Positions 64 through 2,155 of a stretch of DNA of 64,000 bases are shown piece by piece. Position 1 is the stretch's first letter. Each line of letters opens with the position of its first letter. Location of the stretch: NCBI GenBank assembly GCA_965202585.1, contig OZ241833.1, positions 30,814,001-30,878,000 of the forward strand, in the 5' to 3' direction. This stretch comes from Thalia democratica. Lineage: Eukaryota. The translations under genes and the position numbers were made by a program. Below the pieces are notes generated by a model. The model saw only the letters and a program-made list of their open reading frames with translations. It made no database searches and was not told where the DNA came from.

Positions 64-2155
64 AACTAGCTCCTGCATTGAGTTCTCGTCAATCGCCACA
101 ACTTCGAACGTTCCGATGTTGGAGCCGTACAGGTGGTAGAAGAACCTCATGCAGAACCCCTGGGTTGTGGTTTGGGGAAAGTACCTGGAAGTGATCAAGC
201 GTGACGTCGTTCCCGCGCTCAATCCGTCGAAGTGCATGTAGTATCCTGGAGGTTAAACGTAAAATGTTTTAAAGTATGTTGATAAATTAATTAACAATCG
301 GACCTATATCTAGCAAGTTTTATTTTCTTTTAATTTTCGACTTTGTTATTTTTTCGCTTGACTAAATAAATTTTGAAAGTTGATAACGGTAAATTACAAA
401 AAGGTTGATGTTTAGTAACGTTCAGTGTAAATAACTACTGATATTTCCATAAACATTAGCTAAAAAACTATTCTATTTAAAGTTTTGCGTATAGTAACAT
501 AAAAATGTCTTTAAACATTTACAATTATTTTAAATTGCTTTACCTTTCAAAATAATTCAACATTATTTTAAGACAAATTAACCTGTATCAATGGTGGCGA
601 CCAGTGACACTGGACCATTGTGCAGCGGCTTGTACTTGCAGTCGAACCACGTTGGAATTTCTGTCTGGTCCCTGACCTTCATCGTGACCATCGTCCAAGC
701 GTCGCGCGCATCTGTGTTGTTTGATTGTTATTTGTTTTGTGGATTTTTTCAAACGTTTCAAAATTGGAAGAAAAAAAGTAAAAGTTGTTAGATAAAATTA
801 GTTTAATGACTTTATACGTAGAATTTAAGTTTTTGTCTGGATTATTTTGAAACTATCTCCTTACAAACAGCCTTTTCTTTCAATAAATTTAAACAAGTTA
901 ACATAAAATTTAAAAAAATAAGAAAACAAACTGATCCTGATGGGGCAGTCGTCACCGCCTGCTCCCAGGCTCTCCATGAAAGCCACGTCCGAATCAGTGA
1001 AGTACAACCCCTCGGCAGCGTCCTGGACGGCCATTATTATGATTGACTCATACTCCACCTCTTCGTCCAAAAACTTGATCATTGCTTCCACCTAACGAAT
1101 AAAAATATTTGAAATTATCCATATCAGCAAAGATAAATTTTCATTTTTTCAAACAAAAAAAGCTGTATTTTTTGTATGATATGGTGTGTGTTTAAAATTT
1201 GATTCAACAAGTACATGTTGTCAAAAAATAAATATTACACGGTTAATTTCTGGTACCTTGGTCAACCGAACAATACTAAACTAACTAGCTCTTTTTTTGA
1301 GGATTTTGTATGTTATTGCGTGCTTTCGAAATTAAATGAAAATAAAATTTAAAGCTAAACATCAACAACCAAAACAAAAAAAATCTTATTTCAAACCCCA
1401 GCAGAAGTGACGTAATCATCTGTCTGCCAGGTATCGAAAGCCTTCGAGACGATGGTGTCTTTTACGGGATTGATCACCACAATATTATGCCCCCTAGTGT
1501 TCTTGCACAGGTCGTTTCCGTTCACCTCGATTATACAGTAGTTTCCGTCCTCGTATCCGGCCGATTCCGATTTTACGTGCCACGTGTCTGGATAATATAT
1601 TGGAGTTAGTTTAAATTCAACTGTCTCAAAATCTTGTGTTGGTAGTGTTACTTGTTTCTTAAACATTGTAATATCTGTGTCTTATTCTACTTACTTAAGT
1701 TGTTGATTTTTAAGTATTTTAGAAATTTTATTAAATTTGAAAATAATATTTATAATTGATGAGTTTTATCTACTGTTGATGCTTCTTGTATATGCTTGCT
1801 TTTGTTTTTGACATACAAAACAACACTTTTCAGCTATTAAAACATGCTCTGTTATAAGTTTTCTTTATTTAATTTGATCGTGTTTCTAAGACTTTTTACA
1901 TTACTTGCAAAAATAAACAACAAATCACAGTCTAAAAAAGCTTTTTCTAACCTGCACCGTTAGTGGTGTGGTCCAGGGAAACCCCCTGATTACTGTCCAC
2001 GCCGTCGGCGGAAGTTCCAGTCTGCCTCACCCAATCACCGTCGTTCTCGCTCGTCCAATCGCAAGTGCCGGTTTCGAATGTGCAGTTGCCAGGCAGCACG
2101 TTGTATGTGGGAGTGGGTTGCGTGGTTGCTGGGGACTCCGTTGTCAGGACGTTAC
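64..2155 (-). CDS. MAM36 (numbered N to C within the window), interrupted by the ILEI cassette
   Basis: Exon 1952-2155 ([12 protein letters not shown]...LDHTTNGA) and exon 64-245 ([20 protein letters not shown]...[19 protein letters not shown]). Three ILEI exons lie between them. Confidence 0.88.

Follow-up and report, generated by a model that had tools for sequence, protein, structure and literature searches.

A three-exon ILEI-type cassette nested within a MAM domain of a MAM-array gene of Thalia democratica

Known ILEI and MAM proteins and the Thalia locus

Domains of the Pfam family PF15711 (ILEI) are found in FAM3A-D/PANDER/ILEI, in TMEM2/CEMIP and in the stem of POMGnT1. The FAM3 proteins are stand-alone, single-domain proteins, TMEM2/CEMIP carry theirs in series with G8 and beta-helix parts, and that of POMGnT1 lies in series between the membrane anchor and the catalytic domain. 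To our knowledge, none of the ILEI domains of FAM3A-D or TMEM2/CEMIP has been reported with, or inside, a MAM domain. Long extracellular runs of MAM domains are found in MALRD1, MAMDC4/endotubin and zonadhesin, some of them with LDL-receptor class A modules in between, and in these proteins other modules stand between the MAMs and not within them. The present analysis concerns a stretch of 64,000 nucleotides (nt) from Thalia democratica (contig OZ241833.1, positions 30,814,001 to 30,878,000; hereafter the window), the whole of which is one minus-strand MAM array, and in particular a cassette of three exons (positions 583 to 1587 of the window) encoding an ILEI domain that is nested inside one of these MAMs. 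The observations as a whole are best explained by a real coding ILEI cassette which was placed in the MAM by exon shuffling and most likely has a lectin-type role, an explanation that can be held with good confidence.

The POMGnT1 stem (Protein Data Bank entry 5GGJ and related) is the best match among solved structures to the profile of ILEI domains (A1) described below. It is an accessory carbohydrate-binding module in a larger protein, as the cassette putatively is, but it is not nested and the similarity between single sequences is low (23.7 bits with P0026, the proxy for the cassette described below). Among annotated proteins the cassette is most closely related to the product of the Styela clava gene LOC120341046 (XP_039265410; 117 bits), in which a signal-peptide-like N-terminus is followed by a short run of collagen and then by discoidin and ILEI domains. 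The module of Styela is terminal and stands in series after the discoidin domain, whereas that of the window is nested in a MAM. The classical rule of exon shuffling, in which a symmetric phase-1 module enters a phase-1 intron, fits the locus. However, shuffled modules normally land between domains, and in this case a multi-exon module appears to have landed within one.

Domain insertion in itself is common and affects 20% of multidomain proteins according to a 2026 survey, and neither a MAM host nor an ILEI/FAM3 insert occurs in its text or in those of its supplements that were examined (PMC13114784). MAM-like sequence was found in none of 125 ILEI-bearing representatives probed with 218 segments of the window, and a literature search brought up neither a paper in which MAM and ILEI are joined in one architecture nor any work on MAM arrays of tunicates. 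An earlier note on this DNA, made from the sequence alone, had remarked that the nested architecture was not known to have been described, and nothing found among database proteins or in the literature contradicts it. The combination of ILEI within MAM, and the landing of a multi-exon module inside a domain, appear to be undescribed; shuffling of modules flanked on both sides by phase-1 introns (class 1-1) and nested domains are each well known.

Exon structure and identity of the cassette

Coordinates are those of the window, and exons were read and spliced in silico from the minus strand of positions 1 to 2400. The host MAM begins in exon A (1952 to 2155, 204 nt), which encodes a Thr/Pro-rich linker and the N-terminal part of the domain up to the residues DHTTNGA and breaks off inside a Gly codon (G/GT, phase 1). 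The phase-1 intron that follows (1588 to 1951, 364 nt, 25% G+C, GT-AG) is the original MAM intron, which now serves as the upstream flank of the cassette. Exon B (1397 to 1587, 191 nt, ending in phase 0) encodes the first ILEI strands with the RGHN motif and FDTW, and is separated by a phase-0 GT-AG intron (1092 to 1396, 305 nt) from exon C (932 to 1091, 160 nt, ending in phase 1), which encodes the ILEI helices, the acidic residue of VQDA and the LGAGGDDCP motif. A phase-1 GT-AG intron (712 to 931, 220 nt) leads to exon D (583 to 711, 129 nt), which encodes ARDAW and the C-terminal ILEI strands and ends in phase 1 with G/GT. The downstream flank of the cassette is again a phase-1 GT-AG intron (246 to 582, 337 nt), after which the MAM restarts in exon E (64 to 245, 182 nt; GYYMHFDGL...YGSNIGT). 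Exons B, C and D sum to 480 nt, or 160 codons free of stops, with a phase series of 1, 0, 1 and 1 and boundaries that are all of the form AG...GT. The lengths, splice sites and phases given for the five exons in the earlier note were found to be exact to the base.

Between positions 64 and 2155 the G+C content of the introns is 23–25% and that of the exons 52–59%, and the G+C content at third codon positions (GC3) is 0.68 in the cassette and 0.67–0.75 in the host exons. The plus strand has only short open reading frames (ORFs). No Rfam families or tRNAs were detected on either strand, and the search for traces of a transposon or another insertion mechanism gave only AT-rich chance repeats. A run search yielded two marine metatranscriptome runs containing 6–8% of the words.

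Alone, exon B matches Pfam ILEI with 17.7 bits (profile positions 1–27) and exon C with 14.6 bits (positions 31–70), the two matches being collinear. A profile of 12 ILEI domains, termed A1, those of whose members that were scanned score 41–452 bits per protein for Pfam ILEI, gave 148.6 bits with the spliced cassette, and the claim that the three exons encode an ILEI/PANDER-type domain is borne out by this score. In a search of solved structures A1 found the POMGnT1 stem (E 8.5e-26), FAM3C, FAM3B and FAM3A (about 1e-22) and TMEM2 (1.8e-20). With single proteins the spliced cassette reached 137 bits (P0026), 117 bits (P0123) and 93 bits (P0003, whose own Pfam ILEI match is 171 bits); the scores of 148.6 and 93 bits lie well outside what chance would give. 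P0026 is a stop-free, transcript-type protein with 46% identity to the cassette, and its alignment crosses both internal exon junctions. The Pfam cut-off is exceeded by the close relatives P0026 (52 bits), P0123 (56 bits) and L001 (41.2 bits). On the strength of these scores, and of the matches of A1 to POMGnT1, FAM3A-C and TMEM2, the assignment of the cassette to ILEI is secure. The 160-residue domain has four cysteines which are common to the cassette and P0026 and would fit a disulfide-bonded extracellular module. An exhaustive HMMER search with exon B gave 125 proteins, and the matches scanned had strong Pfam ILEI domains, in contexts that included bacterial C25 peptidases, tandem ILEI arrays and a BTB-ILEI combination (protist).

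Further ILEI copies were observed during these searches. The contig L001 (Logan, SRR22824314) has a copy with 64% identity in which the equivalents of exons B and C form one ORF (positions 81 to 422), the phase-0 intron having been lost; the equivalent of exon D begins some 575 nt further on (positions 999 to 1037), its first 13 residues being identical to those of the window, and the contig ends there. L002 (positions 13 to 1325; contig of JGI sample 3300018893) is a complete small transcript for a protein in which a signal peptide precedes Gly-X-Y repeats of collagen type, a short neck and an ILEI domain followed by a stop. Its ILEI domain is of one subtype with the cassette, to which it is 46% identical, and serves as the head in a layout resembling that of collectins.

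The best non-tunicate matches to the cassette are ILEI domains of bacterial C25 peptidases (P0003, P0004, P0007, P0008, P0064 and others). Some of these proteins also have CARDB or FlgD Ig-like domains, and one has a weak, sub-threshold match to a Por secretion tail. Used as a proxy, P0026 scores 35–52 bits per domain against bacterial ILEI, compared with the 23.7 bits for the POMGnT1 stem, and has no match to FAM3 chains. The stronger match to bacterial ILEI may be due to differing rates of evolution, or the tunicate module may have had an unusual origin.

The position of the cassette within a MAM was examined through the two exons that enclose it. Exon E matches Pfam MAM (PF00629) with 28.7 bits, over the cut-off, at profile positions 44–99, while exon A alone has no Pfam match. 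Two bacterial loci at 32% identity (L004 and L005), found by scanning metagenome contigs with exon E, were used as uninterrupted MAMs for comparison. Exon A aligns to positions 6–44 of the MAM of L004, which is itself Pfam-verified (64 bits). When exon A is joined directly to exon E (1952 to 245) the product aligns to this MAM as one continuous piece (37.9 bits), whereas the product with the cassette aligns in two pieces (residues 21–57 and 228–282). By these alignments the insert is at about MAM profile position 43/44. Elsewhere in the gene, MAM pieces contained in one exon span profile positions 28–94, 1–48 and 16–64 unbroken. The spacing between DHT and Gly varies from one to six residues among the MAMs of the gene, which suggests that the site is a loop. 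It had been proposed that the ILEI domain is nested in the MAM and that splicing 1952 to 245 would restore a canonical MAM; the former is supported by MAM matches on both sides of the insert which are collinear and abutting, and the latter by the single continuous alignment.

Two other features of the array were observed. An LDLa-like module (positions 14585 to 14836, minus strand; Pfam 20 bits, below the cut-off) stands immediately before a MAM start in one exon, and may be compared with the class A modules of the known MAM proteins. In MAM30, a Cys-rich ORF (12835 to 13044, minus strand) with about eight Cys and no Pfam match is a candidate second nested insert, being flanked by exons at 14303 to 14106 (MAM profile 28–75, 16 bits) and 12672 to 12307 (profile 81–136, 15 bits), both weak matches. 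Nesting would appear to recur in this MAM gene at different loops. A single insertion hot spot was considered and ruled out, as the Cys-rich insert (profile positions of about 75–81) occupies another position of the MAM than ILEI does.

Conservation and origin of the module

Two overlapping marine metagenome contigs from different samples, L007 and L008, are 98.6% identical and represent one diverged relative. Their order is exon A (MAM), exons B to D (ILEI), exon E (MAM, GYYMHFDGL...) and last a C-terminal MAM exon, which in L007 matches MAM profile positions 118–158 (25.3 bits against a cut-off of 26.4) and runs on into the next MAM. All junctions are GT-AG with phases 1, 0, 1 and 1. Exons B, C and D are 179, 160 and 129 nt long (468 nt in total), and the introns are 52, 138, 123 and 55 nt, the outer ones which flank the cassette being those of 52 and 55 nt.

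Between the window and this relative the non-synonymous divergence (pN) is 0.232 in the cassette, 0.271 in exon A and 0.266 in exon E, and the synonymous divergence (pS) is about 1.0, which means that synonymous sites are saturated. Saturation is attributed to a shift in GC3, which is 0.68 in the window and 0.26 in the relative (0.67–0.75 and 0.26–0.36, respectively, for the exons overall). With pS near 1 the ratio of non-synonymous to synonymous substitution rates is not computable, so pN and pS are given instead. Constraint on the cassette is no weaker than on the host MAM exons, and the nested arrangement has been kept under purifying selection in the diverged relative. In closer relatives (L003, L006, L009 and P0126) the exons have 89–94% DNA identity and 97–99% protein identity, and the intron between exons A and B is 80% identical to that of L003 over aligned bases. 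The protein identity of exon A is 98.5% with L006, 96% with L003 and 62.5% with L008.

The same three-exon unit was found on Styela chromosome L010, where ILEI is encoded by exons of 188, 157 and 129 nt (474 nt). The exon before the unit stops within a Gly codon (cac g/gt; phase 1), the third ILEI exon also ends in phase 1, and the internal introns have phases 0 and 1 at residues matching those of the window (...A/VKNMI... and ...CPIEI/A...). The third cassette exon is exactly 129 nt in the window, in L007 and in Styela. Since the Styela gene shares exons, phases and intron positions with the cassette, the three-exon ILEI unit is regarded as an old tunicate module of class 1-1. Both of its flanks are in phase 1 and its length is divisible by three in the window (480 nt), L007 (468 nt) and Styela (474 nt).

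The recipient intron is also seen in insert-free form: a phase-1 donor with G/GT lies one to six codons after DHT in seven or more other MAMs of the window, and further exons of the gene have their end at MAM profile position 43 or their start at position 42. At least three MAMs of the gene lack an intron at the DHT position. The statement that this intron position is shared by many MAMs accordingly holds for the seven or more that have the donor and does not extend to the three or more that have no intron there. Exon shuffling, which had been put forward as the origin of the cassette, is backed by the identical three-exon 1-1 unit in the unrelated Styela clava gene.

It is proposed that an old, mobile three-exon module of tunicates (phases 1, 0, 1 and 1; class 1-1) was copied into the host gene, and that exon shuffling put it into a pre-existing phase-1 intron of the kind by which a Gly codon is divided in many of the gene's MAMs. 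As the recipient intron sits within the MAM and not between domains, the outcome would be a nested domain. A complete ILEI/FAM3-type domain would now occupy a surface loop of the MAM, between profile positions 43 and 44, with both domains presumably able to fold, and a lectin-type site would have been added to the MAM scaffold of a giant, probably secreted MAM-array protein. With the module, the recipient intron and the product all visible, this seems about as direct as evidence for exon shuffling can be when it is drawn from sequence only.

Putative function, splicing and inclusion in the protein

In the POMGnT1 stem, residues Arg129, Asp179 and Arg207 directly bind beta-linked N-acetylglucosamine (GlcNAc), the Arg/Asp/Arg set is conserved in FAM3 proteins, and both FAM3C and FAM3A bind GlcNAc resin (PMC9802357). 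The invariant columns R33, D84 and R116 of A1 correspond to positions 43, 93 and 121 of the 5ggj chain, which are residues 129, 179 and 207. All three are kept in the window (TRGHN, VQDA, ARDAW) and in L007 (KRGHN, IKDA, SRDAW). On these conserved residues, a lectin-type site on the MAM scaffold, probably for GlcNAc or a related sugar, is somewhat favoured as the contribution of the cassette. The suggestion that the inserted domain binds glycans has been strengthened by the conserved equivalents of the POMGnT1 residues, and it is still to be worded as a suggestion.

The nested ILEI domain could instead be a module for protein-protein interaction or signalling, cytokine-like as has been proposed for FAM3, with no binding of glycans. 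The physiological ligands of FAM3A-D are unsettled, and MAM domains themselves mediate protein-protein adhesion, both of which would suit such a role. It is nevertheless thought unlikely, in view of the GlcNAc-contacting residues that are invariant in the profile and retained in the cassette, of the binding of FAM3C and FAM3A to GlcNAc resin, and of the company in which this ILEI subtype is found, namely discoidin, a collagen stalk and bacterial surface proteases that face glycans.

Somewhat less likely again is an alternatively spliced switch, in which isoforms with ILEI and with a plain MAM (1952 joined to 245) would be produced and the lectin site toggled by tissue or life stage. In its favour, the cassette is a whole number of codons long in the window and in the relative (480 and 468 nt), the introns on either side are in phase 1, and the product without the cassette aligns as an unbroken MAM. 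However, neutrality of frame is automatic for a 1-1 module in a phase-1 intron, and the Styela module has it likewise; any shuffled 1-1 module would be symmetric in phase and a multiple of three in length, and these features are not evidence for skipping. Skipping would also have to bypass three well-defined exons, and the flanking introns of the relative are only 52–55 nt. The intron adjacent to the cassette is less conserved in the close relative than the exons are (80% compared with 89–94%), so the conserved flanks typical of regulated cassettes are not seen. The cassette is probably included constitutively. A wider view, in which the MAMs of the giant protein would be a general display scaffold whose loops are grafted with different binding modules, the ILEI and Cys-rich inserts among them, by exon shuffling, at least the ILEI graft being alternatively spliced, is considered just as doubtful as the switch itself.

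That exons B to D are a separate small gene, decaying pseudo-exons or chance ORFs in a MAM intron, outside the MAM protein, is highly improbable and was rejected: the A-B and D-E junctions are read from genomic sequence, but exon B lacks both a start codon and a signal peptide, no stop closes exon D, the frame is continuous across each outer junction in the window and in the relative, a pN of 0.23 at saturated pS speaks of strong constraint, codon composition is like that of the host exons, and outer introns of 52 and 55 nt in the relative leave no room for a promoter, a terminator or a separate gene.

Several points weigh against a coding, lectin-type ILEI cassette nested in the MAM. No transcript-derived protein was recovered in three large protein searches (with the exon B ORF, exon A and the exon E segment), which gave only ORFs reading into introns, that is, genomic contigs from marine metagenomes; the metagenome contig scan with exon E returned only the bacterial MAM loci at 32% identity. 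The last third of the host MAM lies beyond the start of the window, and the single-exon ILEI scores of exons B and C are each under the curated Pfam cut-off of 27 bits. Sugar binding has been demonstrated for only a few members of the FAM3-type domains. In L008 (positions 937 to 1014) exon C has deletions of 1 nt and 2 nt (net -3), so that 26 codons are out of frame until the correct reading resumes. Of the nine mismatches of L008 to L007, eight are to T and lie close to the end of the contig, and the deletions are probably assembly noise, although they could mark a damaged allele. A nested coding cassette remains the preferred explanation, and its inclusion in the mRNA of the MAM gene is considered probable.

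No new kind of biology is opened by this locus, the parts and the process being known. It does offer an unusually clean natural case of exon shuffling producing a domain within a domain, with the mobile unit, the recipient intron and the conserved product seen together. As judged from sequence, the MAM sandwich would tolerate an insert of 160 residues in the loop after DHT, which may be useful for protein engineering. The cassette is also further evidence for regarding domains of ILEI/FAM3 type as lectin-like modules, which appear to have been widely reused in the extracellular proteins of tunicates.

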